Of a stretch of 64,000 nt of DNA, positions 6,493-25,648 are shown one piece after another. The first letter of the stretch is position 1. Each line of letters opens with the position of its first letter. Where the stretch lies: sequence record PP695294.1; one strand, written 5' to 3'. The notes under the pieces were generated by a model that was not told where the DNA came from, ran no database searches, and worked only from the letters and a program-made list of their open reading frames with translations. A program made the position numbers and the translations under genes.

Positions 6493-6502
6493 GAGGGTAT
6501 AG

Positions 6503-7345: not shown

Positions 7346-7355
7346 GGATTTTGAC

Positions 7356-8201: not shown

Positions 8202-8222
8202 TCCTGAGTAAAGGAAGTAAGA

Positions 8223-9134: not shown

Positions 9135-9146
9135 TTAGGCCTCGCT

Positions 9147-9187
9147 GGGAGGAGGAAATCCTCCTCCTGGCTACTCCTTTCTTTTTT
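9147..9187 (+). terminator. Probable intrinsic terminator/attenuator
   Basis: GGAGGAGG-AAAT-CCTCCTCC stem with a T tract shortly after. Confidence 0.6.
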
Positions 9188-9203
9188 GGCCGAGGAGGCT
9201 ATT

Positions 9204-10043
9204 ATGGCTTTATATAGTCTGTCTCAGCGACAATATCTGTACGATGCGATTAATGCCGAAAACCCGGATGCTGTTCTACCGATGGGTTTAGACAATGCTA
9301 TCATCGGTACGCCGAAAGCAATCACACCGACAGCAAGCGGTGCCAATACTGAGATTATCATTCGTGGTCGTCAAGGTCGTGGCTATATCGGTCCTCAGAC
9401 GTTCCGTTATAAGCGCTTGTCGCTGAACGACTTATTTAAGAACATGACACCTCAGGTAACTGCACCGAATGCCTACGGTTGGTTGAACGTGGAGTCGAAA
9501 CGTACTGCGTTTGCGCAGAACCTGAACGGTCGTTATGGGTTAAACCTGGTCGCAGATGATATCCCGGAACAATACGTTTATCTGAACGTAAACAACACGA
9601 TGCGTATTAATGCTAGCTGCATTCAATACACCGGCAGTATCACCTTTATGTCTATCCGGGGTAAGAATAACCTCGAAGACTTGGTGGTAAACGACATCTT
9701 GTCGGCTTTGAACCACCCTGCAGCAGCAAGCACTGGTAAGAAATACATGGGCTTCTTGACGTACGGGGAAGACTTTACTGATGAAGTGCAGGTTATGGCC
9801 TCGTTTAAGAACGGGCGAATGGATGTAGGAAGTAACTTTGATTTGGGTTACACGTCCAATCTGATGGCCACATTGGTCGCACGTGGGGTACCGTCGTTTG
9901 ATCCGACGAACTGCACAATTACCCGCTACAAAACGAGTGAGTTGGCGACCGCCAATAAAGCGTACGATAACGTATTGCTGATTACCGGCATTCAGAACGA
10001 CCCGAAAGTAATCGGCGAGTGTATGTTGCACTACAACAACTAG
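9204..10043 (+). CDS. Virion structural protein, paralogue member 5
   Basis: GGAGG RBS before ATG 9204; LYDAINAENP, GYIG..YKRL, LNGRYGLNL, MLHYN. Confidence 0.8.
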   Translation: MALYSLSQRQYLYDAINAENPDAVLPMGLDNAIIGTPKAITPTASGANTEIIIRGRQGRGYIGPQTFRYKRLSLNDLFKNMTPQVTAPNAYGWLNVESKRTAFAQNLNGRYGLNLVADDIPEQYVYLNVNNTMRINASCIQYTGSITFMSIRGKNNLEDLVVNDILSALNHPAAASTGKKYMGFLTYGEDFTDEVQVMASFKNGRMDVGSNFDLGYTSNLMATLVARGVPSFDPTNCTITRYKTSELATANKAYDNVLLITGIQNDPKVIGECMLHYNN

Positions 10044-10053
10044 GAATTAGCGA

Positions 10054-10941
10054 ATGGCTATTTATCAACCTTCTAAAGACGTCCTGTTGGCAGCAGTGAA
10101 CGCACAGAACTCGCTTGCTGTTAAGATGACTGACATCATCTGGTCCTCGCCAAAGGACATCCGTGGTACGGAGAAGGAAACGCTGACTAACCGTAACACG
10201 CAAATTAAAATTACGGCAGATGGGGTAACGGGCTCTACCTGGTCGGGTAAGAAAAATGTCTTCTACAACCGCATGAAAGTCGAAGACTTGTTAGTGTTGA
10301 TTGGTGACACGTTGGCGATCGGCCCATCCAACGAAACCTTGTATGCGGCCATTCCTGGGCTGAACCAACGCTACGGTTTTGTTCTGGAAGAAGCTGACCT
10401 GCAGGACGCAGATATCGAGTGGAACGGTGATAAGACCGAAGGAACTGTGCGTGTTGTTGCACATCCTGAGTCTATCGGTTGGGTTGGACAGGCGACATTT
10501 AAAGTCGTGAAAGGCGATGAGTCGTTAGTCTCTGCAGTCACCACTAACGTCCTGACCGGTCTGAAATACCCGAACGGTCAGATGGGTTCCGAAACCGTTA
10601 CTGCGGTCATTGCAGAGGTTTATTCCTACCCGTACAACTTCACCAAATACCGTGATGAGTTGCTGGCATACACGCCAGGTATTCTGTCCGGACAGCCGTT
10701 GACGGATATGGTTAACCTGCTGAAAGATATCACGGGTACTGCATGGGTAGCGACCACCTCCGCTTCCTACGGTTTGGCGGGCGCGGAGGTTATCAGCGTT
10801 GGTCTGAATGACCCTGTTGCAATGCCGACAAACGCGAAGTACAAGTATGCGCTGGTGTTGAAACTGCCTGTTACCTGTACCACCATCGTCGGAACGTTGT
10901 ATCTCCAGTTCAACGATCTGGACGATCCAAGCGAGGTATAA
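10054..10941 (+). CDS. Virion structural protein, paralogue member 6
   Basis: LLAAVNAQN, RNT, YNRM, LNQRYGFVL, GTLYLQFN. Confidence 0.8.
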   Translation: MAIYQPSKDVLLAAVNAQNSLAVKMTDIIWSSPKDIRGTEKETLTNRNTQIKITADGVTGSTWSGKKNVFYNRMKVEDLLVLIGDTLAIGPSNETLYAAIPGLNQRYGFVLEEADLQDADIEWNGDKTEGTVRVVAHPESIGWVGQATFKVVKGDESLVSAVTTNVLTGLKYPNGQMGSETVTAVIAEVYSYPYNFTKYRDELLAYTPGILSGQPLTDMVNLLKDITGTAWVATTSASYGLAGAEVISVGLNDPVAMPTNAKYKYALVLKLPVTCTTIVGTLYLQFNDLDDPSEV

Positions 10942-10944
10942 TTG

Positions 10945-11772
10945 ATGATCAACTATGCTAAGCCGTCAAACGAGTTGGTCTTTGACCTCATTAACCGGGA
11001 TAACCCAAACCTACCTATTAAAGCGTCGCCGGCAAACTGCTACGTGGAGAAAGTGACACAGGTTCCCGTTAATGCAGCTTCCAACAACCGCAATACGTCG
11101 GCACGCTTGCGCGGTATTCAGGGTTCCGGATTTCGAGACGCAATCACCGTTTACTACGACCGTGTGAACTTAGCGCGGTTATTGCCGTGGGGTCCTTCTG
11201 TCCAGGCGCAGTTCGTCACGTTTGACGCGCCCAACCTCCACTCAGCCTTTTCGGTGCTCTTGGATACTTACGGAGTAAACTTCTCCGCAATCGATATCCA
11301 AAACTACTCACTGTTTGGTGCCAATACCCCAAATTACACCAATACACAGACCATTGCAGCGCTATCGACATCTCCGGCTTATATCGGTTCTGCGACGTTG
11401 CGTTATAACCGTGGTTTACCGGTACTAGACACTTCGGTGAAATCGGATGTCTTGAATGCGATTCAAGAGCCTATCTCGCCGTCTCTCGGTAAGAAGTGTA
11501 TTGATTTGTTGACGTACGGTATTGACTTTACCGCGTATAAAAACCTACTGACAGTAGATGCTTCTGGCCTACCGCAGTGGGCTGGATTGCGTAAGGTGTT
11601 GGATGACCTGGGCATCCCGAACTACGCGGGGCCACTGAACAGCAACACCGTTCAGGATGTGCCGACTTCCACCGCTCAGTTCGCTAACAAATCGTACGAC
11701 CGCGTGGTTATCCAAACGGGCATCGATGAGGAAGGCGTGAAAGGCGTGGCGTACTACCACTATAACAGCTAA
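10945..11772 (+). CDS. Virion structural protein, paralogue member 7
   Basis: LVFDLINRDNP, RNT, YYDRVNL, AYYHYN. Confidence 0.8.
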   Translation: MINYAKPSNELVFDLINRDNPNLPIKASPANCYVEKVTQVPVNAASNNRNTSARLRGIQGSGFRDAITVYYDRVNLARLLPWGPSVQAQFVTFDAPNLHSAFSVLLDTYGVNFSAIDIQNYSLFGANTPNYTNTQTIAALSTSPAYIGSATLRYNRGLPVLDTSVKSDVLNAIQEPISPSLGKKCIDLLTYGIDFTAYKNLLTVDASGLPQWAGLRKVLDDLGIPNYAGPLNSNTVQDVPTSTAQFANKSYDRVVIQTGIDEEGVKGVAYYHYNS

Positions 11773-11777
11773 GTGTA

Positions 11778-11802
11778 GGGGCTCTTCGGAGCCCCATCTT
11801 TT
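11778..11802 (+). terminator. Intrinsic terminator
   Basis: GGGGCTC-TTCG-GAGCCCC-ATCTTTT. Confidence 0.8.
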
Positions 11803-11819
11803 GGCGATGCGGAGTCCCT

Positions 11820-13232
11820 ATGCTATTTTACTCGAAGGAGTCGGCACTGCTTGTATACGACCAAGTCAATCGGGATAACCCTGATTTAGTTGTTAAGCTG
11901 ACGCCGGCTATCGCTGCTTTAACCAGTGGCCCAACCTCAGTTACGTTAAACCAACGTAACACCAAAGCTGTTTTCACCGGGTATCCAGGGACAGGTGTAC
12001 AAGGTAATGTTACCGTGTACTACGACCGGATTAACCTGGCCACTTTATTTAATTTTGTGCCGACTGTGGCTATCAAAGACACAGTCTTAACGGTACGCGA
12101 CGCGCTACCTGCAATAAACAACGCATTGGGGCTTACATTGGTTGCGTCAGACCTGCAGTCGCCTGATGCAAGTCTACCTAAACCGAGCGCTTCGCCGCAG
12201 ACGTTGAAATTAAATATCTCAGGTAATTGCCCTGCGTTTACAGGCAGCTTAACGATACGTTATACCGTCCCGAGCGGTGCAATTTACCCCGATTCTGGAC
12301 CTGGCCCTAAAACGTTGCTGCAAGGTAACACTATTGCGGGTTATTTCGGAACAACCACAACTGCAGAGTTGTTTACACACTCTCAACTTCTTAATGCCAC
12401 TATATCGGCCGGTGCGTTACCACCGGTACATTCTGGTGCCGAAGGTTGGTACAAGTTCTTTTACCAGGGTAGGGTTATTTACTTCCCGATTAGTCCTGTC
12501 GCTAGCTCCATCTCCTGGAATACGTTATATACAAACGGACTCGTTTACGGAACAGACGATAATGGTAAATACCCTGCGGCGACGCCCGTTAACCAGGGAC
12601 GCATCATTAGCTTTACAGGCGCAGACAACAAAAGGTTTTACTTCCGTGTTCGTCTACCTAGTGCCGGGAAAGACCCATACGTCAGCGGCACCCCAACTGC
12701 CGCTGAGTTAGCAGGTAGTGAGTTTGAGATGTTCAACTTTCTGTATAATGGAACGTGGGACAAACCGATTAACAGTTACTGGTCGCTGTTCTGTTTATTG
12801 AAAGATACACTGAACACCAACGTCGCCAATCATCGCATGGCGACGTTGTCTGGAGCAAGTTGGACAAACTTAGAAAAATCATCGAGTGCGGGCAACTACT
12901 ACTGGTTCCCGGTGCTGGAGTTGGTGGATAAGTCCACAGTTACCTTGGGTTTAGAAGATATCCATGGTGCGGTAGATTACAGTCTCCAACCGTGCAGTGT
13001 GTCCGCAGAAAACACATTTAGCCTCAAGCCGTTAGTGCTCGGTAATCCGGATACTACCGATTTCGAACCGGTAGTTGTTACTTCAGAAAACAGTTTCGCA
13101 CTGCATCCGCCTGCTTTAATGCTGCCGAAGACAGTCGACTTCCAACCTATTGCGGCCACCGCTGAAATGTATACGCCGCCCGACAAGACATCGTTAACGT
13201 CTCTTAACGGTGAACTGGACGGCTTTAAGTAG
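11820..13232 (+). CDS. Virion/fibre protein, cassette 1 gene A
   Basis: Family N-domain, YPDSGPGPKxLxxG..GYFG domain, Pro-spaced repeats, C-terminal NGELDGFK. Confidence 0.8.
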   Translation: MLFYSKESALLVYDQVNRDNPDLVVKLTPAIAALTSGPTSVTLNQRNTKAVFTGYPGTGVQGNVTVYYDRINLATLFNFVPTVAIKDTVLTVRDALPAINNALGLTLVASDLQSPDASLPKPSASPQTLKLNISGNCPAFTGSLTIRYTVPSGAIYPDSGPGPKTLLQGNTIAGYFGTTTTAELFTHSQLLNATISAGALPPVHSGAEGWYKFFYQGRVIYFPISPVASSISWNTLYTNGLVYGTDDNGKYPAATPVNQGRIISFTGADNKRFYFRVRLPSAGKDPYVSGTPTAAELAGSEFEMFNFLYNGTWDKPINSYWSLFCLLKDTLNTNVANHRMATLSGASWTNLEKSSSAGNYYWFPVLELVDKSTVTLGLEDIHGAVDYSLQPCSVSAENTFSLKPLVLGNPDTTDFEPVVVTSENSFALHPPALMLPKTVDFQPIAATAEMYTPPDKTSLTSLNGELDGFK

Positions 13233-13243
13233 AGGTATCTTCC

Positions 13244-14242
13244 ATGTCTTTTACTTTGCGTTGGAAAAATCCAAACGTAATCTCTACGGTAGTAAAAATC
13301 TACCGTGATGTTAAAGATATCACACCAAGCGCTTTGCCTGAACCGATTGCAACGCTCTCAAATGGCGAGACAGAATGGCGTGATGCCACCGCCAAACCAG
13401 GCGCAATCTATTATTACCTTCTAACGGTAACCGCCAACGGTAAAACAGTAGCGTCGTCTAGCCAGAAATATACCATTGAAATGAAGCGGGGAATCGGTCC
13501 AATGACTATTCTAAACGGTGACGACCGTTTAGGGTTTATGGGTGCGGTTCCTTACGACGAACAATGGCTTCCGTCGCAAATGCCACCTGCATTTTTGGCG
13601 ATGTTCCCTAACCTACTAACCGATCGTGTGGCGTTGTATAAATTTACCCGAAACGGGAAGATCTATTACATGCTATCTAATACGTCGCAGTTCCCGAATA
13701 CGCCTGTGGACTGGGCTTCCCTCTATCAAGCCGGTTTAGTCTATGGTACAGGCGATGCTGGCCCAGAGAACGGCCATGGAACGCTACCGGCCACTCCACA
13801 AGACGCTAAGATAGTCCACAAAGGGGATACGTACATTATGCGTCTTCCTCGCGGCCTGACGACGTCTAGCGAGCCTCCTGCGTATCCTTTCGTAGCTGAC
13901 TATAATGGGAAAACCCATGATGAAATCGCTTCTCTAACCAACCCGTGTGAGTATAACGATTTACTTTACACGATGGTTAACGAGGTGCCGAAGAAACAGC
14001 GTTGGGCTAACTGGGCAACAATCGGTTATACTTATCTGGGGCAAGGTACTTTGGGAACCTTGGCACAGTATTTCGGCGGTGGTGTTCTCTGTATGGAACA
14101 CGATACCGCGGAAGACCGTGTGCTCCATCGTGGTATTTTTAACAATGCCGGTGGAACACCCGTATCCACGATTCAGCGTATAAACTATTTATCACCCACC
14201 ACGAAAGGGCGCTACTACCCTATCTTTGAACTGGTCGAGTAA
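13244..14242 (+). CDS. Virion protein with Fn3/Ig-like N-domain, cassette 1 gene B
   Basis: MSFTLRWKN..VKIYR..ALPEPIATLSNGETEW..YYYLLTVT, shared with 16698 and 20054. Confidence 0.8.
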   Translation: MSFTLRWKNPNVISTVVKIYRDVKDITPSALPEPIATLSNGETEWRDATAKPGAIYYYLLTVTANGKTVASSSQKYTIEMKRGIGPMTILNGDDRLGFMGAVPYDEQWLPSQMPPAFLAMFPNLLTDRVALYKFTRNGKIYYMLSNTSQFPNTPVDWASLYQAGLVYGTGDAGPENGHGTLPATPQDAKIVHKGDTYIMRLPRGLTTSSEPPAYPFVADYNGKTHDEIASLTNPCEYNDLLYTMVNEVPKKQRWANWATIGYTYLGQGTLGTLAQYFGGGVLCMEHDTAEDRVLHRGIFNNAGGTPVSTIQRINYLSPTTKGRYYPIFELVE

Positions 14243-14251
14243 GGGGCAGTC

Positions 14252-15175
14252 ATGACTATACGGTTAAGCTGGCCGTCCCAAGCCAGCAAAGGTCTTACCG
14301 CGATTGAAATCTACCGCAAGGAAGGATGGAACGCAACAATCGACGTTTACAACCCAGGTACACCTCACGCCACCTTATCCGGTAGCGCGGTAGAGTTCGT
14401 AGATAATATCGATACCCTGACGAAGAATACAACTTATCGTTACTGGGTAGCTGCTGTGAAAGATAGTGAACGACTTATCGGCAATCCGATTACGCAAGGG
14501 TTCTATCCGGACACTGGACCGGGGCCACAAACTATTTTGCGTGGCGATTGGGCGTCAGGCTATTTCGGTACGGTATCTAATACCGAGTTCTTTAATACTG
14601 CCGAGTTAAAACTCATGTTAACCGCGCAGCAGGGAAACATGTTTACTTACGACCCTCAGGAATGGCACAAGTTTATTTTCCGTGGGCGAATTGTCTTCTT
14701 CCCAGCGACGATGCATTCGAAAAGCAACTCGGTACAAATGGCGTATCAGTACGGCATGATGTACGGGACCGATGATGTCGGAAGTATTGTTCCGCAGGGA
14801 GCCACGGCGACTAAACAAGATTGTAAGGTCACGAAGGATGGTCGTACGTACCGTATCCGATTACCTTACGCAGTCCCGTACGACGCGGCACTCTCAGGAC
14901 AGGATTACAACAACGGTGAATGGCGAAACACAATGGGCCGTTTGTATCCTGTCGGTGCACAGTACGCAGCCCTCGGTCTTGGTGCGATTGACTCACTTGA
15001 AAGACAAGGCGCGACTGCGCAGCCGAATGAGTCAGGTGCCGCTGTATTAGCTCCTTTGTGGAGCAACAACATATTCGCTTATGCGTATGGCACCGTGCCT
15101 ATGGGGATTAGTAACACCGCAGGTGTCGGGAACTCGGCCACGATATTCTTTGCTTTTGAATTAGTCTTACCGTAA
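14252..15175 (+). CDS. Virion protein with Fn3/Ig-like N-domain, cassette 1 gene C
   Basis: IEIYR..PGTP.ATL.G..YRYWVAAVK..GPGPQ..GDW..GYFG..ELVLP, shared with 17690 and 21056. Confidence 0.8.
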   Translation: MTIRLSWPSQASKGLTAIEIYRKEGWNATIDVYNPGTPHATLSGSAVEFVDNIDTLTKNTTYRYWVAAVKDSERLIGNPITQGFYPDTGPGPQTILRGDWASGYFGTVSNTEFFNTAELKLMLTAQQGNMFTYDPQEWHKFIFRGRIVFFPATMHSKSNSVQMAYQYGMMYGTDDVGSIVPQGATATKQDCKVTKDGRTYRIRLPYAVPYDAALSGQDYNNGEWRNTMGRLYPVGAQYAALGLGAIDSLERQGATAQPNESGAAVLAPLWSNNIFAYAYGTVPMGISNTAGVGNSATIFFAFELVLP

Positions 15176-15188
15176 TGGAGTAAATACC

Positions 15189-16685
15189 ATGGGGTTGTAT
15201 ACAGAACCTTCAATGGAACTGCTCTGCCAACAAATTGTGCGTGACAATCCCGGTTTAGCAGGAAAAATCACCCCTGACTCCATTGGGGTCAGGGGTGTTC
15301 CTGTTGTGAAAAACGTTAACGGACGAAACACTCAGATTACGTTGGTAGGAAAACCCGGTAAAGGATTTGCTGGGGAAATAACGGTATATTACGACCGGTT
15401 GAATCTGGCCAGTCTATTTAAGTCTGGCCCGAATATGGTGAGTATTCCACGTAGCGCACAAACCCATGCGGAAGCGTTACCGGCGTTCAATGAATTGAAC
15501 GGGTTGAACTTAACCGCGAGTGACATCACCAGTCCAAACGTTGCATTAATGAAATACGCTACGCCGGAAACTGTAACTCTGACGGCGCACGCTAACTCCT
15601 TGTGTTATACCGGGTCATGCAAGATGACCTATGTTTACGAACCGATTGCGATGTATCCGAAGTCGGGTCCTGGGCCAAAAGGATTAATGGCCGGTAATGA
15701 GTTATACGGATTCTTTGGGCTGGTAAGCGCGGAAGAGTTATTCACATCTGATGAAATGGTGTATGCCCTCTATAACGGCACCACCTGGCCTAACCGCTAC
15801 GCTATCAAGTGGCTCAAATTCTTTCTGAATGGGGCGGTAGTGTTTGTTCCGACCCGTGCGATTTGCAACGTTACCTGGGCAGACCTGTACAACAAGGGTG
15901 CAATATTTGATTCCGGAGACGCAGGACCTCGCCCGAAGTCGACTTACACACCTGTCGATGTTGAACAGTTGAAATACATGGTAAAACGGGATGATGAAGG
16001 AACGCATTATTTCAGAATGTCTATCCCGTATTACACCGAGAACGCCGCCGCGCCTGATTGGAGTAAACCGCCGTCAATCACCTCTATCCTGTCACTGACC
16101 AGCAAATTGGGGTCGGTGAACGTATATGGGGAATGGGGAACTCTTAGCACGACTGATGCTAACTTCCTGGATTACGTGTGGTTACGACACCAGTTCGGTG
16201 CCGACCAAGCGTATTACCAGTCTATCAGTGGGAGCTATCGTTCAAACACCTACATCTACACCTCTTCTGGCTTTTGGCCAATCCTGGAGATGTTTGATGT
16301 TGCCAATGAACCTGTGCCGTTGATTGACGAAGGTGCAGAGCTAACATGGGCACCGTCCGTGGTTACTCTGACGGACATCGACCAAAATGAATCGCTTCGT
16401 GTGGTGCCTATTACGGAAACCTCCGCTGCAGCGAATCCACGTCCGTTAGTTTTCAACACCGACAACACCGAAACTGCCACCCCTGCCTGGGTGCGGGAAG
16501 CGTCATCAGACTCACCACGTCCTCTGCTTGCCACGACGGACAATGATGAACGTGCATATTCCGTCGCGGTAACAGGCATGGCTAGCGTTAAGATTAGACC
16601 GATTATTCTCACGACTGACCAAATCGCCCAACCTTCAAAAATTACTCTGGGCGATACTAACGGTGAGTTGGATGGATTCCAATAA
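15189..16685 (+). CDS. Virion/fibre protein, cassette 2 gene A
   Basis: MGLY..ELLCQQIVRDNP, YPKSGPGPK, PRPL repeats, C-terminal NGELDGFQ. Confidence 0.8.
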   Translation: MGLYTEPSMELLCQQIVRDNPGLAGKITPDSIGVRGVPVVKNVNGRNTQITLVGKPGKGFAGEITVYYDRLNLASLFKSGPNMVSIPRSAQTHAEALPAFNELNGLNLTASDITSPNVALMKYATPETVTLTAHANSLCYTGSCKMTYVYEPIAMYPKSGPGPKGLMAGNELYGFFGLVSAEELFTSDEMVYALYNGTTWPNRYAIKWLKFFLNGAVVFVPTRAICNVTWADLYNKGAIFDSGDAGPRPKSTYTPVDVEQLKYMVKRDDEGTHYFRMSIPYYTENAAAPDWSKPPSITSILSLTSKLGSVNVYGEWGTLSTTDANFLDYVWLRHQFGADQAYYQSISGSYRSNTYIYTSSGFWPILEMFDVANEPVPLIDEGAELTWAPSVVTLTDIDQNESLRVVPITETSAAANPRPLVFNTDNTETATPAWVREASSDSPRPLLATTDNDERAYSVAVTGMASVKIRPIILTTDQIAQPSKITLGDTNGELDGFQ

Positions 16686-16697
16686 GAGGTAACGACA

Positions 16698-17687
16698 ATG
16701 GCTTTTACAATTCGTTGGACGAACAATAACCCTGGGGCTTCGACCGTGAAGCTGTACCGCGACACCAAACCTCTGGTGCGTACGGCATTACCTGAACCCC
16801 TGGCAACGTTCACTAACGGGGAAACTGAGTATACTGACCGAACAGCGATACTGGGGACAACGTATTACTACATGACCACTGTGACAGTGGGAAGCCGAAC
16901 ACTGTTCAGTCCGCAGAAATCAATTCTGATTCAGAACCGTCGCGGTATCGGCATCGTGACTCCACAGTACGGTGATGACCGCTTTGCGTATTACGGGTAT
17001 GTGGCGTACGGTGAATTGCCTAGCGCGGCTGATTATCCGCCAGGGTTTGTGGCCATTTCTGGATATGACCCAACTGTTAAGCCGGGCTTGATTAAGTTCC
17101 AGCTAGACGGTAAAATTCTGTATCTGTTTAGTGGTCTTCGTGTGAACGGCAACACGCTGTATAGCCGTGATGCGATTTATAACGCGGGTTTGCTGTACGG
17201 TGTGGCGGGACCTGGTCCGGAAGGCGGTCATGGCGATTTACCTGACGTTGACCAGGCTGGGGAGTTTACGTGGTTGGGTGACCGCTATCGGATGCGCCTG
17301 CTGCGCGGTTTAACACTCGACAGTGAAAGCCCGGTCATGACACTCGATGCACAGTGGGACGGTAAACTCCATGACGCGTCACCGTATACTGCCGATAGCG
17401 AATACAACCGACTCATCTATGGGATAAGTAGCTGGTTCCCAGAAAAGAAAAAAGTGATGTCCCTGATAAAGTGGTCGAACTCCAGCATATTCGGAAATGG
17501 ATCGCTGGTGGCAGGCCGTGGGGCGCATTGTCAGGAGTTTGACCCAGAACGTAAGTTGGGGCTGACGCGCGGATTGGCGGCGGCGGATTCCACTGATACC
17601 GTGGATAACCTCCAGCGTATACAACATGTCCCTGGTGCGACCGTGGGCGGTATTTGGATTCCAGTAATCGAGCTTATCGAGGATTAA
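16698..17687 (+). CDS. Cassette 2 gene B (Fn3/Ig-like N-domain)
   Basis: MAFTIRW..ALPEPLATFTNGETEY..NRRGIG..GDRYRMRLLRGLT. Confidence 0.8.
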   Translation: MAFTIRWTNNNPGASTVKLYRDTKPLVRTALPEPLATFTNGETEYTDRTAILGTTYYYMTTVTVGSRTLFSPQKSILIQNRRGIGIVTPQYGDDRFAYYGYVAYGELPSAADYPPGFVAISGYDPTVKPGLIKFQLDGKILYLFSGLRVNGNTLYSRDAIYNAGLLYGVAGPGPEGGHGDLPDVDQAGEFTWLGDRYRMRLLRGLTLDSESPVMTLDAQWDGKLHDASPYTADSEYNRLIYGISSWFPEKKKVMSLIKWSNSSIFGNGSLVAGRGAHCQEFDPERKLGLTRGLAAADSTDTVDNLQRIQHVPGATVGGIWIPVIELIED

Positions 17688-17689
17688 TC

Positions 17690-18589
17690 ATGCCTATTAC
17701 ATTACACTTTGCACAACGGAAGCCACAGGCGCTCGATAACATCGAAATCTATCGCAAGACGCCGGGCAACGCCACAATTGATGTTAATGCACCGGGAACG
17801 CCTCTGGCAACCCTTCCGGGTGACGCTACATCGTACGAAGACAACGCTGTGGAAAACAACACCACTTACCGTTATTGGATAGCTGCGGTTAAAGACGGTG
17901 AGCGTGTCTTCAACACCCCTACCGCCCAAGGGTTCTTTTTAGACACCGGGCCTGGCCCCCAGAAACTGTTATACGGCGACTGGCACGCTGGATACTTTGG
18001 AACAGTAACGCCAGCAGAGTTATTCACTAACACGGAACTGAACGGCCTCGTGGTGAATATGTTCAGTTCCGCCGTTGGTGCCTGGCATAAATTCATTTAC
18101 AAAAACCGTATTCTGTTTATGTCCGATAACTCGATAATAAACGCTAGCCCGCAGTTCATTTATAACCAGGGGATGATGTACGGCCAGGATGGCAATGGAT
18201 ATGTACCGGGCTGGGCTACTGCACGTAACCAACGCCGCACGGTGGCGAAGAACGGTTACGAATACGTGGTGCGCTTGCCGTATTTGTTCGACTACAAATT
18301 CTGGACGTCTTACGTTGGAAGCGGTAACACTGAGTTGTATCTCGACGGTGAGTGGTTTAACACCTTCGCGCGCCTGTACAACTACAGTGGGCAGTTTCCG
18401 CGCTTTGACGACCTTCCAGTCGGTCCAATCGATTCGGTTACTGCCCAACAATCTGCATTCTTTGCGGCTATGAATAACACGTCCAGTCAGTGGTACAACC
18501 GTCCACCTTACCCTGAGTCGCCGGCATGGAGTAACTACGGTACCACTACAATACGCTCCATTGCGGTACTTGAACTCGTTCTGCCTTAA
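17690..18589 (+). CDS. Cassette 2 gene C (Fn3/Ig-like N-domain)
   Basis: GAGG RBS before ATG 17690; GPGPQKLLYGDWHAGYFG; ends ELVLP. Confidence 0.8.
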   Translation: MPITLHFAQRKPQALDNIEIYRKTPGNATIDVNAPGTPLATLPGDATSYEDNAVENNTTYRYWIAAVKDGERVFNTPTAQGFFLDTGPGPQKLLYGDWHAGYFGTVTPAELFTNTELNGLVVNMFSSAVGAWHKFIYKNRILFMSDNSIINASPQFIYNQGMMYGQDGNGYVPGWATARNQRRTVAKNGYEYVVRLPYLFDYKFWTSYVGSGNTELYLDGEWFNTFARLYNYSGQFPRFDDLPVGPIDSVTAQQSAFFAAMNNTSSQWYNRPPYPESPAWSNYGTTTIRSIAVLELVLP

Positions 18590-18600
18590 CAGGAGACTTC

Positions 18601-20043
18601 ATGGGATTGTATAGCGCACCCGAACTGGAATTGCTCTGCCAACAAGTCGTAAGGGATAACCCTGAACTCGCAGGAAGAATCAGCGCTGATTCGATTGGGG
18701 TGAGGGGTATTCCTGCCGAGACCACTAAGAATGGTCGTAACACGGTAATTACGTTGGTAGGTAAACCCGGTAAAGGTTTCTCTGGGGAGTGCACGGTTTA
18801 TTACGACCGTTTAACATTATCAGATCTATTTAAAATAGCTCCGCGCGTCTACGTACCACAAACGGCCAAGACCGTGCGGGATCTTCTCCCAGCTCTACGC
18901 GATTTATACGGTGTTTGGTTATCTGATAGCAGTGTACAGTCGGTAGACGCGCCTATCAAATCGCTGGCAACGCCAACACGTATTAATTTAACCGCGTATA
19001 ATAGCGTATGCTATCGCGGCTATATCCCGGTCGATTATTTGAATGAAGCCGTGGGCTACTATCCAGATTCTGGGCCAGGCAATAAATATTTGTTGGCAGG
19101 GGACAGCACAAACGGATACTTCGGCCACGTTTCTCAGCAAGAGTTATTTACCTTTGCTGAACTAAACAACCTAATTCGTCCTGATGTTGCCCCAACGAAA
19201 ATGACTTTCGAATGGTTGAAATTTTTCAAGGATGGTAAGATTGTTTATCTACCGACTACCGGAACGTTAACAGCAACCTGGACGGCCCTTTATCAAGCGG
19301 GTGCCATTTTCGGTACAGGTGACACTGGTCCGTATCCAGACGGTATCGAACCTGTTGACCAGGCTTTGATTGTCACGAAAACTGAGAATAACAAGACGCA
19401 TTATTACCGCGTCTCCGTTCCGGTTAGCCCTGATTTATCAAAGGCCACACCGTTGTGGCTTATTTCACAACTCGGTGACGGTTCTACGGGCGGCGACTGG
19501 GCAAATGACACCACGTTAACCAGAACCACCGTCTTCTTCACGCAACAACTGTTAACCGGGGGTAACCCTGTTAAAGTACAACGTTGCAATATGCGCGGTG
19601 GCTCAGTTGAATGGGTAACCCTTACAGATACCACTTACTGGTGGCCTGTTTTAGAGGAAATCAATAAGGACGACATCGTCTTACCTTTAGCTGATGTGGA
19701 AGGGGATGTTGTGTGGCGCGTTAGGGTTATTCCTAATGTACCATCACCACAACCTGATAGCATTCGCCCTCTTGCAGTCGAGGTTGCGACAACAGATGCG
19801 CCGAGACCTCTAGCAACAACTGCGGAACAGGTGGAAGAACCTATCAGCCCGATTGTGGTGGGTGAACCAAACGTCGATACTGCGCTGCCGTTATCGACAG
19901 TGTCGAACAGCGTAGGTACAGTTAGGCCGATGGTTGTACTTGAACCACACGTCGACGCACCGCGTCCACTACCGCCTACTCAGGCAGAACCTCCACTTAA
20001 AACAGATTTAGCAACCGCGAACGGTGAGTTGAACGGCTTCTAA
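18601..20043 (+). CDS. Virion/fibre protein, cassette 3 gene A
   Basis: MGLYS..ELLCQQVVRDNP, YPDSGPGNK, PRPL repeats, C-terminal NGELNGF. Confidence 0.8.
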   Translation: MGLYSAPELELLCQQVVRDNPELAGRISADSIGVRGIPAETTKNGRNTVITLVGKPGKGFSGECTVYYDRLTLSDLFKIAPRVYVPQTAKTVRDLLPALRDLYGVWLSDSSVQSVDAPIKSLATPTRINLTAYNSVCYRGYIPVDYLNEAVGYYPDSGPGNKYLLAGDSTNGYFGHVSQQELFTFAELNNLIRPDVAPTKMTFEWLKFFKDGKIVYLPTTGTLTATWTALYQAGAIFGTGDTGPYPDGIEPVDQALIVTKTENNKTHYYRVSVPVSPDLSKATPLWLISQLGDGSTGGDWANDTTLTRTTVFFTQQLLTGGNPVKVQRCNMRGGSVEWVTLTDTTYWWPVLEEINKDDIVLPLADVEGDVVWRVRVIPNVPSPQPDSIRPLAVEVATTDAPRPLATTAEQVEEPISPIVVGEPNVDTALPLSTVSNSVGTVRPMVVLEPHVDAPRPLPPTQAEPPLKTDLATANGELNGF

Positions 20044-20053
20044 GGAGTAACAG

Positions 20054-21052
20054 ATGGCATTCACACTACGCTGGAAAAATGAAAATCCGGCAGGTTCAAT
20101 TGTTAACATTTATCGGGGCACGGCTAAAATAAATACAGCCGCATTACCAGCCCCTATTGCAACTTTAAGTAATGGCGAAACGGAATGGACGGACGAAACC
20201 GTTATTCTTAACACCCGTTACTGGTATCTTTTAACAGTAACTGTTAACGGCCGTACCGTAGGTAGTCCACAAAAATCCATTGTCATTAAAAACCGTCGTG
20301 GTGTGGGTGGCGTCGACCAGATTAACTATTCCGATACTGACGACTTGGCGTTTCTGGGGCAGTTGCCGTTCGAAGAACAGATGACCTATGACGCGTTGCC
20401 TGCAGGCTTTCGTGCATTAACAGGGATATCGGGCACGGGCACGCTAATCATGAACAAGTTTTATCGACATGGTAAAGTTTACTACATGATGAACAGCGGC
20501 GGACGATTTAACTCTACACTTTACTCGTGGAATGACATTTATAACGCGGGGCTTGTGTACGGTGTTGATGGATTTGGTCCTGATAACGGACGTGGGGATT
20601 TGGCAGGTGTTGACCAGAGTGGGTTGTTTGAATGGCAAGGCGACACCTATCGGATGCGATTGCTGCGCGGTTTAACCGACGGGGACGAACCGACAGTAAT
20701 GACATTGGATGAATCGTTGCGAAACGCAGACCATGATGACTTGGAATATGGTCGCTGCGAATATAACGATTTTGTTTATCCGTTCGGAGATTGTATCCCT
20801 AACAAACAAATGCTCCCTAACTGGACTAATATTAGTCCAGCGTCCATTTATGGGAGCGGTAGCGCTTACCAAGGCAAAGGTTTCTTGTGCCAAGAACGTG
20901 ATCCTGAATCGGGATTAGTTCTGGTTCGCGGGTCTGCGCCTATCGATTCAAGCATAACCAATACGTCGAAACGTAACCTCTCCCAAGTTACGTTAATTGA
21001 CAGTGCTGAGAAGGTCGGTTTGTACGCATTCGTTATCGAGTTAGTGGAGTAA
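20054..21052 (+). CDS. Cassette 3 gene B (Fn3/Ig-like N-domain)
   Basis: MAFTLRWKN..ALPAPIATLSNGETEW..GDTYRMRLLRGLT. Confidence 0.8.
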   Translation: MAFTLRWKNENPAGSIVNIYRGTAKINTAALPAPIATLSNGETEWTDETVILNTRYWYLLTVTVNGRTVGSPQKSIVIKNRRGVGGVDQINYSDTDDLAFLGQLPFEEQMTYDALPAGFRALTGISGTGTLIMNKFYRHGKVYYMMNSGGRFNSTLYSWNDIYNAGLVYGVDGFGPDNGRGDLAGVDQSGLFEWQGDTYRMRLLRGLTDGDEPTVMTLDESLRNADHDDLEYGRCEYNDFVYPFGDCIPNKQMLPNWTNISPASIYGSGSAYQGKGFLCQERDPESGLVLVRGSAPIDSSITNTSKRNLSQVTLIDSAEKVGLYAFVIELVE

Positions 21053-21055
21053 AAC

Positions 21056-21958
21056 ATGTCGATTATCTTAAACTGGAAACAACAGCCAGGTCAGACTTTA
21101 GATTCCATTGAAATCTATCGTTACGACAACCCCAGACAAAGTGTTAACCCAGTAGCACCGGGGGAACCTATTGTAACACTACCAGGTAACACAACGACGT
21201 ACGAGGACACGACCACCGAGGCGTATAAAACGTATCAATATCGCATCGTGGCGGTAAAGGGCACTGAAAAGGTTATGGGGCTGCCGATTGTACAGGGCGA
21301 CTTTCCAATGACAGGGCCCGGCCCACAGGAACTTATTCGTGGCGATTGGCATCGTGGCTACTTTGGCACACTGACAAACGAAGAATTTATTCTTAACCAT
21401 GCCGAGCTGAATGGTTTAATTGGCTTTAATGCCTGGAACCAAGCTCCAACATTGTTCCATAAATTCGTTTTCAAAGGACGCATTCTGTTCATTCCTGACA
21501 CGGTGACCCGTTTAGGGACGACGTGGAACGAACAATACCAGCAAGGTCTGGCCTGGGGAACAGATGACTACGGTTTCCCGCCACGGGGCGTCACTACCAC
21601 TAACCAGCGTCGGACATTTAATAAAGACGGTTACGAGTATGTGGTACGTTTGCCTCGACTCGGAGACTACAGTTATGGGCACAGCACCTACCTAAGCAGC
21701 GGTGGTTATTTTCAAGATGGCGAGTGGCACAACACGTTCGCAAGCTTGTTCCGCTACGCGGGCGTCGTAAGACGTTTTGGCGACTTACCGGCGCGCTCCG
21801 GCGGTAGTCCAACCGATTCAAGCGCAACATTGTTTGCCAACGGTTATGACAACGCCACCCCCTGGTACTATCGCAGCAACTCACCAGACACACCATCGTA
21901 CACCTCTTCGACCAATAGCGCGTCGGTAGTCCACGTTATCGAACTGGTTCTTAGCTAA
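21056..21958 (+). CDS. Cassette 3 gene C (Fn3/Ig-like N-domain)
   Basis: IEIYR..GPGPQELIRGDWHRGYFG..GYEYVVRLP; ends ELVLS. Confidence 0.8.
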   Translation: MSIILNWKQQPGQTLDSIEIYRYDNPRQSVNPVAPGEPIVTLPGNTTTYEDTTTEAYKTYQYRIVAVKGTEKVMGLPIVQGDFPMTGPGPQELIRGDWHRGYFGTLTNEEFILNHAELNGLIGFNAWNQAPTLFHKFVFKGRILFIPDTVTRLGTTWNEQYQQGLAWGTDDYGFPPRGVTTTNQRRTFNKDGYEYVVRLPRLGDYSYGHSTYLSSGGYFQDGEWHNTFASLFRYAGVVRRFGDLPARSGGSPTDSSATLFANGYDNATPWYYRSNSPDTPSYTSSTNSASVVHVIELVLS

Positions 21959-21969
21959 CAGGAGCTAAT

Positions 21970-22062
21970 ATGGGGTTTTACTCATCCACTGCACTTGAGC
22001 TGTTGTGTCGGCTCATTCAGCGGGATAATCCCCAACACGCAGGTCGAATCAGCTGGAGTTAA
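21970..22062 (+). pseudogene. Relic 5' end of a fourth cassette gene A
   Basis: GGAG RBS, then MGFYSSTALELLCRLIQRDNPQHAGRIS, homologous to MGLYSAPELELLCQQVVRDNPELAGRIS, then a frameshift and stop. Confidence 0.8.
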
Positions 22063-22091
22063 AGGGATAGCGTACTTCACCATAACAGCTA

Positions 22092-22125
22092 AAAATAGGC
22101 CCTGAAGGGCCTATTTTCTTTTTTT
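22092..22125 (+). terminator. Intrinsic terminator
   Basis: AAAATAGGCCC-TGAA-GGGCCTATTTT plus T tract. Confidence 0.85.
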
Positions 22126-22136
22126 AGGACGTTGCA

Positions 22137-23456
22137 ATGATCAACTATAACAAACCTGTCATGCAGCTGGTTTGGGATCAGATTAATCGTGATAACCCGC
22201 AGCTCAAGAAACCACTCAACGCAACCAACGTGGCGTTATTACAAGGTCCTTTAACCAATGCCTTGCGCGATGGCCGCAACAGCCGTATAGTGGTAAACGG
22301 ATTACAGGGTGGCGGTTACAGCGGTAAGATGGACATCTACTACGACCGCTTAAACCTTTCGCAGTATTTTAAAGGCGTCAGCGTACCGGTTAAAGTACCT
22401 TATCGGGCGACGTCCTACCGCGACATCATCGACCGGATTTCCGCAGCTTGTGGGCTGGTGCTTACTGCTGACGATTTAACGTATCCTGACAGCCAGTTTG
22501 CAATGATCACTGTGGCAACGGGCGATCGGACGGTGGCGATTAAATCGGATAACCCCGCATTCACGGGTCACATTCCTATTAGCTTTATTCGTGAAGAGCC
22601 CAGCTTTGCCGACTTGTACCACACCACCGAAACCGGAGCTTGGGAACCCATGGATGTTTACAGCACGGTCTATCGACTCGACTGGAGCATGTACACCCAA
22701 CAGATAATCAATATCCCGATGGGTACCCCGCTGCGACTAAACAGTAACTCGTACATGACCCAGTTCATCGCGGCGCTGTCGGCATGGTCGGGCATCCCGT
22801 TCACTATCGGTAATGCTGCTACTGATAACCCGTATGACCTCTATGGGTATGTCGCTACACGCAATAACAACCCAGGCTTAGACCCTGATATGCGTGGGGA
22901 GTACAATTACTGCGTGAAGTTGACGCCACCTGAGGATATGGGTAATCTCCGCCGTCCGTTCTTCTTGCACTTTGGTCCGAAAAATAACGTGGCCTATTTG
23001 GCGCAGGAAGAGGACGTCGAACGTTATGCGCGTTACATGAGTTTCCGGGAAACCAGCCCAAATTCGATGAGCGTCACGTTGTATCAAAACGAGTACGTGT
23101 TGACTCGGGCAGAATCGCCTGAAACTGCGGATGATTTAACGGGTTCCCCGTATGGCACTCGATACTGTACCGGGAGTATTCGACGGCTGATGCAACACGC
23201 GTTTCCGACCGAAGAAATGTTCCAAGAAAGTATTGCTAACCGGCGTCGGGTACTGTACCACACTGCTTACACCACCACGACATCAGCTATTACTTACCAG
23301 GGACTATACCGTAACGGATACCAATCCAAACAAATGACGAGCATTTACTCGAATTACTGTAACTATTTCATCTATTACGACCCAAGCAAAGGCGGCTATA
23401 TGGTCTACAGTCCATATAGCAAAACCGCCCCGGTCCCTTGGTATCCACCGCTATAG
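22137..23456 (+). CDS. Virion/fibre protein (family N-domain, divergent C-terminus)
   Basis: LVWDQINRDNP, RNS, GYSG..YYDRLNL; C-terminal YYD..PYSKTAPVPW shared with the next gene. Confidence 0.8.
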   Translation: MINYNKPVMQLVWDQINRDNPQLKKPLNATNVALLQGPLTNALRDGRNSRIVVNGLQGGGYSGKMDIYYDRLNLSQYFKGVSVPVKVPYRATSYRDIIDRISAACGLVLTADDLTYPDSQFAMITVATGDRTVAIKSDNPAFTGHIPISFIREEPSFADLYHTTETGAWEPMDVYSTVYRLDWSMYTQQIINIPMGTPLRLNSNSYMTQFIAALSAWSGIPFTIGNAATDNPYDLYGYVATRNNNPGLDPDMRGEYNYCVKLTPPEDMGNLRRPFFLHFGPKNNVAYLAQEEDVERYARYMSFRETSPNSMSVTLYQNEYVLTRAESPETADDLTGSPYGTRYCTGSIRRLMQHAFPTEEMFQESIANRRRVLYHTAYTTTTSAITYQGLYRNGYQSKQMTSIYSNYCNYFIYYDPSKGGYMVYSPYSKTAPVPWYPPL

Positions 23457-23470
23457 ACTAAGGTGTCACC

Positions 23471-25648
23471 ATGTCCTACACTCCCGATTTAGTGGCGACC
23501 GTGATTCGGTCGCTCAACCGTAAAAACGCGGTCGCCAAAGCAGTAGACCCCGCTAACGTACGCCTGGTGTCCGTGGCGCATCGTGACGAAAAAACCCTAG
23601 ACGTCACACTGACAGGGGGTCCGGGGTATTCAAATTACGGTCAAATTACGGCCCAAGTCACGAAGCAAAATATTGCTGATTATTTCGCTAAGGTTAAGTT
23701 GGATGCCATTCCCACTTGTGCATCCATTCACGAACTGTTGCCGCATTTAGACACTTTACTGGGGATTACCTTTTTAACCGACGACTTTGAAGACCTGCCT
23801 ATCACTTGGACAAACAATGCTGCGCGCATCACGTTCCAGGCGAAACAGACAAGTCTTGTCTGGTACGGCAGCCAAACGCTAGATGTGATAAACGGTGACG
23901 TGGATATCAACACCGTCTACACTGTTACCAACATCATTCTCACGCTAAAGGCTGCGAATAAACAGCAGTGGATTAACTTCTACTCTAATGCAACCAAACG
24001 GATCGTGGATCTTGATAAAGTCGATGTCAGCGCCCCGATGTCCCCGGAGGATATAGGCCAAACCTCTGCGTATAACAGCGTCGTGGCTTTGACCGCTAGA
24101 CCGGGGAGCGGGATGTTTGGAACGAAGTATGTGTTCTTTTCACGTAACAAACTCGAGACATATGCAGGCAAAACCACATACGTCCCGGATGATTTCACCG
24201 GTAGCCTGCACGATGCTCTGGCCATCGAGACACTCGGCATTCGGAGTGTTTTTGATGTAAACGAAATTGCTCCTGTAGAGAACTTGGCAGGCGAGTGGCC
24301 GAGACAAGTGCAATTGGCACCCGTAGAGGGTTCGTACAAAGTCATGGGCAGTGCCACGTTGAATGTAGCACGCTATCAAGATAACGAGCAAACCCTTAAC
24401 CTGAACTACACAACTACGTCGCAACTTTCGGACAGCTACTGGGCCACAACGTTGACCAACCATGCGGCGTGCGGGCGTTTGTTTGTTAACGTGACCGTAG
24501 ATGCGGGGGCTTTCGTTTATCGCGACAGCAACCTGAAACCGACGTTCGTTATCGACGAATTGCCGCAAATTGGCGAGGTGGTTTGGAACTTCGTTAACCG
24601 GGGAACCATTCTTGGTCGTGGTGGTTCGGGTGTGGTCTACTCTATGCCTGCGAACACATCAGCAGACGGAGCTGACGCAATCCACATTACCGATGCCTTC
24701 CGCGGCAAAGTCACCATCGAAAACTACGGCACCATCGCCGGAGGTGGGGGCGGGGGCGACTACTATGCGTTTAGCACCACCAAGATCGGTGGAGCTGGTG
24801 GTGCGCCTCTCGGGCCAGGCGCGGCGGTACCCAGCGGCACCAATAACCGTAACGGCTTAGCTGGGTCCCGTGACAAAGGCGGTGCTACCCAGTTAGTCGT
24901 CGCACAATTTACCGGCTACCAGAGTCGCTACTATGGCGGTCCTGGTGGCGATTGGGGCCAGCCGGGACGATATACAGCGTTCGAGCAATGGAACACCCCG
25001 GCTACCGGCTCGCCGGTCTATGTCTACGGTCGTGAAGACGGGATGTCATGGACTCGCCCTGGGATGGCAGGCGAAGCCGTCGGTGGGAATAAAAGTATCG
25101 TCAACTGGGTATCCGTCGGAACGGTGAAACCGAATGTCACCGACGAGTACCAAGAGTTCCTCGACTACCTCGCAGATTTAGATGCCAACCGATTGGCCAG
25201 TGCGGATGGGATAGATAAAGTCACCGACCCAACCAAACCTGTAGTTGTGGAGTTCTTAGGTACGATTATTTCAGGTACGCTGTTCAAAAAGCAAAACATA
25301 CCCGGCGGTTTGGTGGGAACACCATACGGCGATGCTGTAGCCAACTTACCAGCCACCACATTGTTTGGTATCATGGCACACAGTGTATCGGAGTTTGATA
25401 TTGTGCACGACACTTGGCGTTACAACCGTGCGGTAATGTTCACCCTAAAACCCGCGCCTACCGGGGCGATTGGCCTCGCTGTGGAACGCAACCGGGTGAA
25501 ATCGGCTACCAGTAGTACACCGGTGGAGAGGTTCTATGTCGATCGCTTCGTGTATTACGATGCGTATCTCGGTAAAATGATGGAATGTAATCCGTATACC
25601 AAATCTGCCCCTAAACCGTGGGTGCGGCCAACGATACCGTTATCGTAA
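23471..25648 (+). CDS. Putative receptor-binding fibre protein with T-even gp38-like glycine-rich adhesin domain
   Basis: Two tandem family-like N-domains, then NRGTILGRGGSG..NYGTIAGGGGGG..GGAGGAPLGPG..GGPGGDWGQPG..GMAGEAV. Confidence 0.7.
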   Translation: MSYTPDLVATVIRSLNRKNAVAKAVDPANVRLVSVAHRDEKTLDVTLTGGPGYSNYGQITAQVTKQNIADYFAKVKLDAIPTCASIHELLPHLDTLLGITFLTDDFEDLPITWTNNAARITFQAKQTSLVWYGSQTLDVINGDVDINTVYTVTNIILTLKAANKQQWINFYSNATKRIVDLDKVDVSAPMSPEDIGQTSAYNSVVALTARPGSGMFGTKYVFFSRNKLETYAGKTTYVPDDFTGSLHDALAIETLGIRSVFDVNEIAPVENLAGEWPRQVQLAPVEGSYKVMGSATLNVARYQDNEQTLNLNYTTTSQLSDSYWATTLTNHAACGRLFVNVTVDAGAFVYRDSNLKPTFVIDELPQIGEVVWNFVNRGTILGRGGSGVVYSMPANTSADGADAIHITDAFRGKVTIENYGTIAGGGGGGDYYAFSTTKIGGAGGAPLGPGAAVPSGTNNRNGLAGSRDKGGATQLVVAQFTGYQSRYYGGPGGDWGQPGRYTAFEQWNTPATGSPVYVYGREDGMSWTRPGMAGEAVGGNKSIVNWVSVGTVKPNVTDEYQEFLDYLADLDANRLASADGIDKVTDPTKPVVVEFLGTIISGTLFKKQNIPGGLVGTPYGDAVANLPATTLFGIMAHSVSEFDIVHDTWRYNRAVMFTLKPAPTGAIGLAVERNRVKSATSSTPVERFYVDRFVYYDAYLGKMMECNPYTKSAPKPWVRPTIPLS

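Follow-up and report, generated by a model that had tools for sequence, protein, structure and literature searches.

A nine-gene locus in a Seoulvirus-like jumbo phage

We analysed a 64,000-nucleotide stretch of sequence record PP695294.1 (hereafter the window) and concentrated on positions 11820-21958, where nine genes on the plus strand follow one another in the order A-B-C, three times over. By sequence comparison, the window is SPN3US-type jumbo phage sequence. At the DNA level the region matches Salmonella phage 1252 with 100% identity; the figure for SPN3US and other Seoulvirus jumbo phages is 97-98%, and positions 11820-21958 correspond to gp145-gp153 of SPN3US (SPN3US 121518-131656) at 97.8% DNA identity. 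The nine genes, and the repeat tails encoded at the ends of the three A genes, are the following.

11820-13232, plus strand: A1, gp145, 470 amino acids
13244-14242, plus strand: B1, gp146, 332 amino acids
14252-15175, plus strand: C1, gp147, 307 amino acids, an FN3 domain followed by a predicted lectin-like domain
15189-16685, plus strand: A2, gp148, 498 amino acids, same architecture as A1
16698-17687, plus strand: B2, gp149, 329 amino acids
17690-18589, plus strand: C2, gp150, 299 amino acids when read from its ATG
18601-20043, plus strand: A3, gp151, 480 amino acids
20054-21052, plus strand: B3, gp152, 332 amino acids
21056-21958, plus strand: C3, gp153, 300 amino acids
12945-13232, 16330-16685 and 19690-20043, plus strand: repeat tails of A1, A2 and A3

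All nine open reading frames lie in the positions and order given in an original prediction for this locus. Only the size of C2 had to be corrected: the 311 amino acids assigned to it run from a TTG start at 17654 that overlaps B2, whereas the ATG at 17690 (299 amino acids) agrees with the SPN3US annotation and with the N-termini of the paralogues.

Paralogy of the cassettes and distribution of sequence variation

All-against-all BLASTP confirmed, at the sequence level, that the paralogy of the three cassettes is far above chance. The A proteins are 29-39% identical to one another (E 1e-59 to 1e-95), the B proteins 38-47% (E 1e-62 to 1e-88) and the C proteins 37-46% (E 1e-54 to 1e-72). B and C are more distantly related to each other (approximately 22-31% identity in BLASTP), and residues 155-320 of A align to residues 83-230 of B and C. 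A conserved GPGP..GYFG block, singled out in the original prediction, proved to be the start of this domain, which is common to all nine proteins.

Identity among the window's own paralogues is distributed unevenly along their length. In A, mean identity is 44% in the N-terminal domain, 38% in the first half of the shared domain, 17% in its second half and 21% in the tail, and it rises to 60% over the last 15 residues. The B proteins follow the same course, with 54% in the FN3 domain, 42% and 30% in the first and second halves of the shared domain and 47% over the last 12 residues, as do the C proteins (45%, 47%, 27% and 42%, respectively). Conserved N-termini and extreme C-termini with a diverging remainder had been predicted for these genes, and the regional identities agree with that description (38-54% and 42-60% versus 17-30%). 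Orthologues of cassette 1 from ten phages showed the same conserved-to-variable gradient.

Between the window and SPN3US, the ratio of nonsynonymous to synonymous substitution rates (dN/dS) was 0.08-0.68 per cassette gene, with 10-44 differences per gene and hence low power, and 0.05-0.23 for the short paralogues gp138-gp144. The values indicate that the cassette genes are probably under purifying selection that is somewhat relaxed. In the interval 5600-26400 there was no template/variable repeat pair of a diversity-generating retroelement, a reverse transcriptase not having been searched for, and the best direct repeats in that interval were paralogous stretches, 73-74% identical.

Domain architecture of the A, B and C proteins

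The A proteins begin with a recognised module. Pfam DUF7941 (PF25613; gathering score 27 bits) matched A1, A2 and A3 with 109.7, 104.3 and 79.2 bits (E 1e-22 to 1e-31), the matches covering only profile positions 1-153 of 276. The A N-terminus also matched PDB chain 9xqd_0 (Z 8.8; Foldseek E 1.8e-5), and a profile of the window's twelve N-domains identified that chain as PHIKZ127 (E 3.2e-6). The N-terminal module of A is homologous to phiKZ gp127, and the docking domain that had been proposed for the conserved N-terminus is, in the case of A, a known assembly or docking module (Pfam; PMC13742148).

The AlphaFold2 model of A1 (mean predicted local distance difference test score, pLDDT, of 76) was folded to about residue 375 and disordered over residues 380-470. 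The layout of A1 is accordingly read as a DUF7941 N-module (residues 1-150), a predicted lectin-like domain (about 155-375), a disordered tail of 26-amino-acid repeats (about 376-455) and an NGELDGF end. Across 28 A proteins the tail is built of 13-residue units paired into 26-residue, proline-anchored repeats, with spacings of 13 and 26 dominating, and is terminated by the conserved NGELDGF. Because A1 of phage JN03 has exactly one 26-amino-acid unit more and A2 of phage SPLA5c exactly one fewer, the 26-amino-acid repeat is a real unit of change.

The B and C proteins are built differently. DUF7941 gave no match in the six B and C proteins at Pfam E values up to 0.1, and no other Pfam family was matched in any of them. 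B1, for which the predicted model was confident (pLDDT 90), consists of an FN3 domain at residues 1-80 and a lectin-like domain at residues 81-332. Residues 1-80 superposed on many FN3 domains with Z 8-9 and a root-mean-square deviation (rmsd) of 1.9-2.6 Å over 70-78 residues. The Pfam fn3 model itself was unmatched in B and C, and the assignment is one of fold level only; at that level it bears out the Fn3/Ig-like N-termini previously read for both proteins. B and C are joined to the DUF7941 family only through the domain they have in common with A, within the variable half of which B carries an insertion of about 45 amino acids. The ELV with which B and C terminate is matched in the alignment to PVLEL, which stands inside the A protein where its domain ends, and so represents the closing strand of the shared fold. 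It is not a separate docking peptide.

We interpret A as a member of the DUF7941 family with a lectin-like payload, and B and C as DUF7941-less partners that combine FN3 with the same domain. As far as sequence and predicted fold go, gene order, paralogy and domain architecture are established.

The shared domain is predicted to have a C-type-lectin-like fold

Residues 154-370 of the predicted A model were compared with 48,161 representative chains in an unfiltered search that was independent of Foldseek. C-type-lectin-like folds took about 45 of the first 50 places. The best was Legionella Lcl (Z 6.9, rmsd 3.8 Å over 116 residues) and Bdellovibrio Bd2740 reached Z 6.5; other top matches included PvdO, TvpA, Mtd, TaqVP, invasin, natural killer (NK)-cell and myeloid lectin receptors, and the enzymes FGE and EgtB. 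The scores are modest, and it is the uniformity of the match list that argues for a C-type-lectin-like fold in the predicted shared core. Bacterial adhesins have this fold, as do receptor-binding proteins of phages, Mtd among them, and the variable residues of Mtd and TvpA are situated at the fold's C-terminal end. Pfam Lectin_C matched none of the nine proteins, and a DUF6273 match in the ESM Atlas (score 0.82) was below a meaningful level and was not used.

In an alignment of 82 copies of the domain, only two glycines and one lysine are invariant, and the nearly invariant positions are Gly, Tyr, Pro and Gln; no conserved set of Cys, His or Asp residues is present. This last result bears on the possibility that B and C are enzymes, which we regard as very improbable. 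Such a role would be in keeping with GenBank records that call the Proteus phage 7 homologues glycosyl hydrolases, with the presence of the catalytic branch of the fold (FGE, EgtB, PvdO) among the structural matches, and with the predicted glycoside hydrolase domains of some Goslar DUF7941 proteins. However, beyond the missing residue set, no Pfam glycoside hydrolase was matched at E values up to 0.1, and an active site would lie in the hypervariable half of the fold. The annotation of the Proteus phage 7 homologues was itself rejected: two glycoside hydrolase entries appeared in Foldseek with non-significant E values (0.12 and 0.52) and misfit alignments, and none appeared in the match lists of the 48,161-chain comparison.

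The SPN3US genome contains exactly nine copies of the domain, all in gp145-153. Beyond this genome, a profile of the 82 copies was compared with 1.84 billion representative proteins and matched 2036 clusters, of which 1445 had E <=1e-10. Most matched clusters are proteins of about 300 amino acids that have the B/C architecture, the domain occupying residues 80-210. Giant proteins also occur among them, from contigs of approximately 250-275 kb, with up to eight tandem domain copies together with Laminin_G_3, Kelch or BspA-type repeats. A tblastn search of GenBank phages located the family in 129 records, nearly all of them jumbo phages of Erwinia, Salmonella, Pseudomonas, Ralstonia, Cronobacter and Serratia, and the best structural relatives in BFVD were all chimallivirus "virion structural proteins".

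Cassettes are inherited as units and turn over among related phages

We scored 27 cassettes in ten related IMG/VR genomes. The A-B-C order was complete in every one, and no partial cassette was present among them. Inter-cassette distances measured on A, B and C correlate with one another at 0.75-0.79, a level reached in 0 of 500 within-genome label permutations, which shows that cassettes are inherited and evolve as units. Four types of cassette can be distinguished, of which type I always comes first, at 45-70% identity, and is followed in the window by type II and a second, diverged type II; the combinations in other phages are I+III+IV, I+II+IV, I+III and I+II+III+IV. Relatives carry two to four cassettes per genome, with Erwinia phage ChrisDB having four complete ones (gp162-173).

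Neither the number nor the sequence of the cassettes is invariant, since cassette 3 has been lost, recombined or replaced among near-identical phages. Phage vB_EcoM_EC001 is approximately 97.5% identical to the window on both flanks and is without window positions 18620-22066, that is, cassette 3. In Lh1B and SPLA3, matches were limited to the first 6.8 kb of the region, which suggests that these phages are also without cassette 3. SPLA5c (L017 7301-8375) has a B2/B3 recombinant in which C2 and A3 have been removed, with a short duplication and a frameshifted hybrid gene in the record; the explanation is a broken gene or faulty assembly of that record. In JN03, cassette 3 is reduced to stubs and a diverged cassette stands after it. 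With two to four cassettes and with deletion, recombination and replacement all occurring within one genus, the copy-number part of the copy-number-variable capacity foreseen for this locus is supported.

The records of several SPFM phages (LR535901-LR535913) each yielded about 40 short matching pieces with fragmentary proteins, which suggests frameshifts from low-quality assembly and not biology.

Virion association of the cassette proteins

The gene family, its virion location and the idea of filaments are already published. Thomas et al. 2016 (PMC5105663) assigned to the head a family of 17 paralogues whose last member is gp154. Ali et al. 2017 (PMC5694885) describe paralog family B, of unknown function, with 20 members including gp138-154, all of which were found in a tailless mutant; in its Supplementary Table 1 the nine cassette proteins have 0.48-2.15 spectral counts per kDa and the 12-copy portal has 0.93. 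Scheuch et al. 2023 (PMC10052503) compared whole virions with heads from a tail-tube amber mutant, with counts in triplicate. After normalisation, the head/virion ratios were 1.06-1.44 for gp145-149 and <=4% for tail proteins, and all nine proteins were present at undiminished levels in purified tailless heads. When we scaled the 37-slice head counts of that study to the portal, our own arithmetic gave very roughly 6-22 copies per protein.

The DUF7941 module has been studied in other phages. Basu et al. 2026 (PMC13742148; Sci Adv, November 2026) reported that DUF7941 proteins are abundant in Goslar virions and that purified gp22 forms filaments. AlphaFold predicted head-to-tail docking with the disordered linker on the next N-domain, and some members have predicted carbohydrate-binding, hydrolase or LRR domains. 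These authors proposed a baseplate-anchored "fibre cloud" for host recognition, with phiKZ gp126/gp127 at the peripheral baseplate; their text makes no mention of SPN3US, lectins or fibronectin.

The cassettes as candidate binding units of the virion

On balance, and with appreciable doubt, we favour the view that one three-gene unit, present in three diverged tandem copies, accounts for the nine genes and builds lectin-like binding units that the virion carries at low copy number. A would enter the virion through its DUF7941 N-module, which would polymerise head-to-tail into filaments, and would display its predicted C-type-lectin-like domain with the hypervariable C-terminal half; behind this domain would lie the flexible 26-residue-repeat tail ending in NGELDGF. 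B and C would most likely be kept in the virion through binding A, giving three different lectin-like heads per cassette. For the heterotrimer put forward in the original prediction, the indirect indications are the co-inheritance of A, B and C and their spectral counts, which are of similar order. Different cassettes, or cassette sets, would then provide different specificities for cell-surface ligands, probably glycans, when phage and host first make reversible contact. Exchangeable units of this kind are suggested by the strict co-inheritance, the rapid turnover and a binding-type fold whose distal half is hypervariable, and we infer that the units stand outside the particle, bind ligands and have a role in host recognition.

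The site of attachment is contested, with SPN3US data pointing to the head or a co-purifying part and phiKZ and Goslar data to the peripheral baseplate. The adhesin reading put forward in the original prediction was supported in part, by a predicted lectin-like fold of the sort found in receptor-binding proteins and adhesins, but the picture of a tail adhesin is at odds with proteins that are undiminished in tailless heads. As they stay with tailless heads, a tail-fibre reading is not supported for SPN3US. A more specific arrangement, which we consider doubtful, would be a three-headed unit with A as the hub, the FN3 domains of B and C on A's 26-residue repeats, and the DUF7941 filaments on the head or neck and not on the baseplate.

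The published head/virion ratios could also reflect internal head proteins that are packaged with the DNA and possibly ejected, and whose lectin-like and FN3 domains have host or phage molecules as their ligands. SPN3US heads contain much disordered internal protein, and gp141 and gp160, two abundant members of the family, carry the mark "head ejection?" in PMC5694885, from the Thomas laboratory. We nevertheless hold an internal location to be quite unlikely, because FN3, C-type-lectin-like and gp38-adhesin domains (the last in neighbouring gp155) are typical of extracellular binding, the DUF7941 protein phiKZ gp127 is modelled on the baseplate exterior, and Goslar gp22 makes long filaments in vitro.

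Head association would likewise suit structural ornaments of the capsid, vertex or neck that serve stability or assembly and have no host-binding role. Copy numbers near that of the portal are suitable for symmetric sites, and SPN3US capsids have unassigned outer and vertex densities. In a purely structural part, however, variation from two to four cassettes, with deletion and replacement in near-identical viable phages, would be unexpected, and the most variable part of these proteins is the distal half of a ligand-binding-type fold; ornaments seem to us no likelier than an internal location.

Several observations weigh against external, lectin-like binding units. Retention in tailless heads is also compatible with an internal location. 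Spectral counts, near equimolar for cassette 1, depart from equimolarity within cassettes 2 and 3, where B exceeds A two- to fourfold. The lectin-like assignment has modest scores (Z <=6.9) and a predicted model as its query; sequence searches of the PDB with A1, B1, C1 and the domain profile gave no match to any solved structure, and neither the canonical C-type-lectin disulphides nor EPN/QPD or WND are conserved in the 82-sequence and nine-copy alignments. With dN/dS below 1 for every cassette gene against SPN3US, there was no signal of positive selection at this depth in what is a low-power test. Finally, the loss of cassette 3 did not track isolation host among EC001, Lh1B and SPLA3. The first two were isolated on E. 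coli and SPLA3 on Salmonella, and we rejected a host correlation of this loss because two-cassette phages come from both.

Comparison with known systems

Among the closest published counterparts of the A proteins are the DUF7941 filament proteins Goslar gp22/gp23 and phiKZ gp126/gp127, which have the same N-module as A1-A3 and for which host recognition has been proposed. They differ in that A matches only the N-terminal half of the model and that B and C are without DUF7941. The filament proteins have moreover been placed at the peripheral baseplate (PMC13742148), whereas the cassette proteins are found with heads in SPN3US proteomics.

Mtd of Bordetella phage, TvpA of Treponema and TaqVP of Thermus have the same general fold as the cassette domain (Z 4.6-5.9), with variation towards the C-terminal part of the fold, and Mtd serves in phage receptor binding. 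The cassette domain has no sequence similarity to any of the three. In addition, Mtd, TvpA and TaqVP are diversified by retroelements, whereas the cassettes have diversified through duplication and divergence of genes and through the exchange of cassettes. The best structural matches, the Lcl C-terminal domain, the Bd2740 fibre tip and invasin/intimin (Z 6.9, 6.5 and 4.9), are surface adhesin heads that end fibres or stalks, a likeness of fold level only at 6-13% identity. T4 Hoc and similar proteins are head-associated, have Ig-like/FN3 domains and are thought to mediate weak surface adherence, and B and C carry FN3 as well; Hoc, however, sits at every hexamer and has a far higher copy number than the approximately 6-22 copies estimated here, and the cassette proteins add a lectin-like head and are encoded in multi-gene cassettes.

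Paralog family B comprises the same genes, with approximately 98% identity over gp145-153, and in the available parts of the papers is a 17- to 21-member family of virion proteins of tailless heads. It is treated there as one PSI-BLAST set, whereas our analysis separates two domain families that are joined through A. In those parts of the SPN3US family accounts (PMC5105663, PMC5694885 and PMC10052503) we found neither the order of the three-gene cassette nor the assignment of lectin-like and FN3 folds, FN3 partners without DUF7941, the 26-amino-acid repeat tail, or the turnover and repertoire of cassettes between phages.

Chimalliviruses serve as models of phage cell biology and are candidates for therapy, and how they first find a host is poorly known. 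Basu et al. 2026 (PMC13742148) leaves the binding component of SPN3US-type phages unstated, and the cassettes are concrete candidates for the binding heads. The domain map given here separates conserved anchor parts from a hypervariable distal half. That relatives carry two to four sets suggests that this already published protein family may include a kit of exchangeable parts for holding on to host surfaces. If the units are borne on the capsid, these phages would have a repertoire for host-surface recognition that is shuffled by recombination and is separate from the tail fibres; if the proteins are internal, a fast-evolving lectin-like family within the capsid itself would need an explanation. 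The question can be tested without new engineering, as phages with two, three and four cassettes, and a clean deletion of a single cassette, exist naturally.

Neighbouring DUF7941 genes and other features

BLASTP showed that the gene family reaches past 11820-21958 in both directions, to gp138-gp144 upstream and gp154/gp155 downstream. The features flanking the nine-gene block are listed below.

5695-11772, plus strand: gp138-gp144, seven tandem short full-length DUF7941 paralogues of 265-303 amino acids
11778-11795, plus strand: GC-rich terminator-like hairpin between gp144 and A1, at the upstream edge of the block (consensus scan only)
22092-22117, plus strand: terminator-like hairpin with a T-run after C3, at the downstream edge of the block (consensus scan only)
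22137-25648, plus strand: gp154 and gp155, each with a DUF7941 N-module

Between phages, gp138-144 are 56-85% identical, with the exception of gp138 in locus L009 (43%), and are far better conserved than cassettes 2 and 3. They are candidates for the filament body, which gp141 and gp143, both abundant in virions, may form. Downstream, gp154 joins a DUF7941 N-module to a C-terminal part of unknown nature, and gp155 (23471-25648, plus strand, 725 amino acids) joins one to Pfam GP38, the T-even tail-fibre adhesin (E 7.9e-18). The gp155 fusion shows that the DUF7941 module is used for mounting recognised receptor-binding parts, although published mass spectrometry classed gp155 as a head protein despite its GP38 domain.

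The position of these genes differs between phages. In L009, the genes resembling gp154 and gp155 are found on the upstream side of cassette 1 (6246-9982) and not downstream, and in ChrisDB neither is present in the 6 kb after the cassettes, the only interval checked. A more distant jumbo phage from IMG/VR (L013, 264 kb) has about twelve DUF7941-like genes at 7164-16613 and no recognisable A-B-C cassette, which indicates that paralogue arrays expand independently in different lineages. Within the nine-gene block, no hairpin was reported in A1 or A3 that would match the one in the 5' part of the A2 coding sequence (15269-15297, plus strand), which has a perfect stem of 13 bp and a 3-nt loop.

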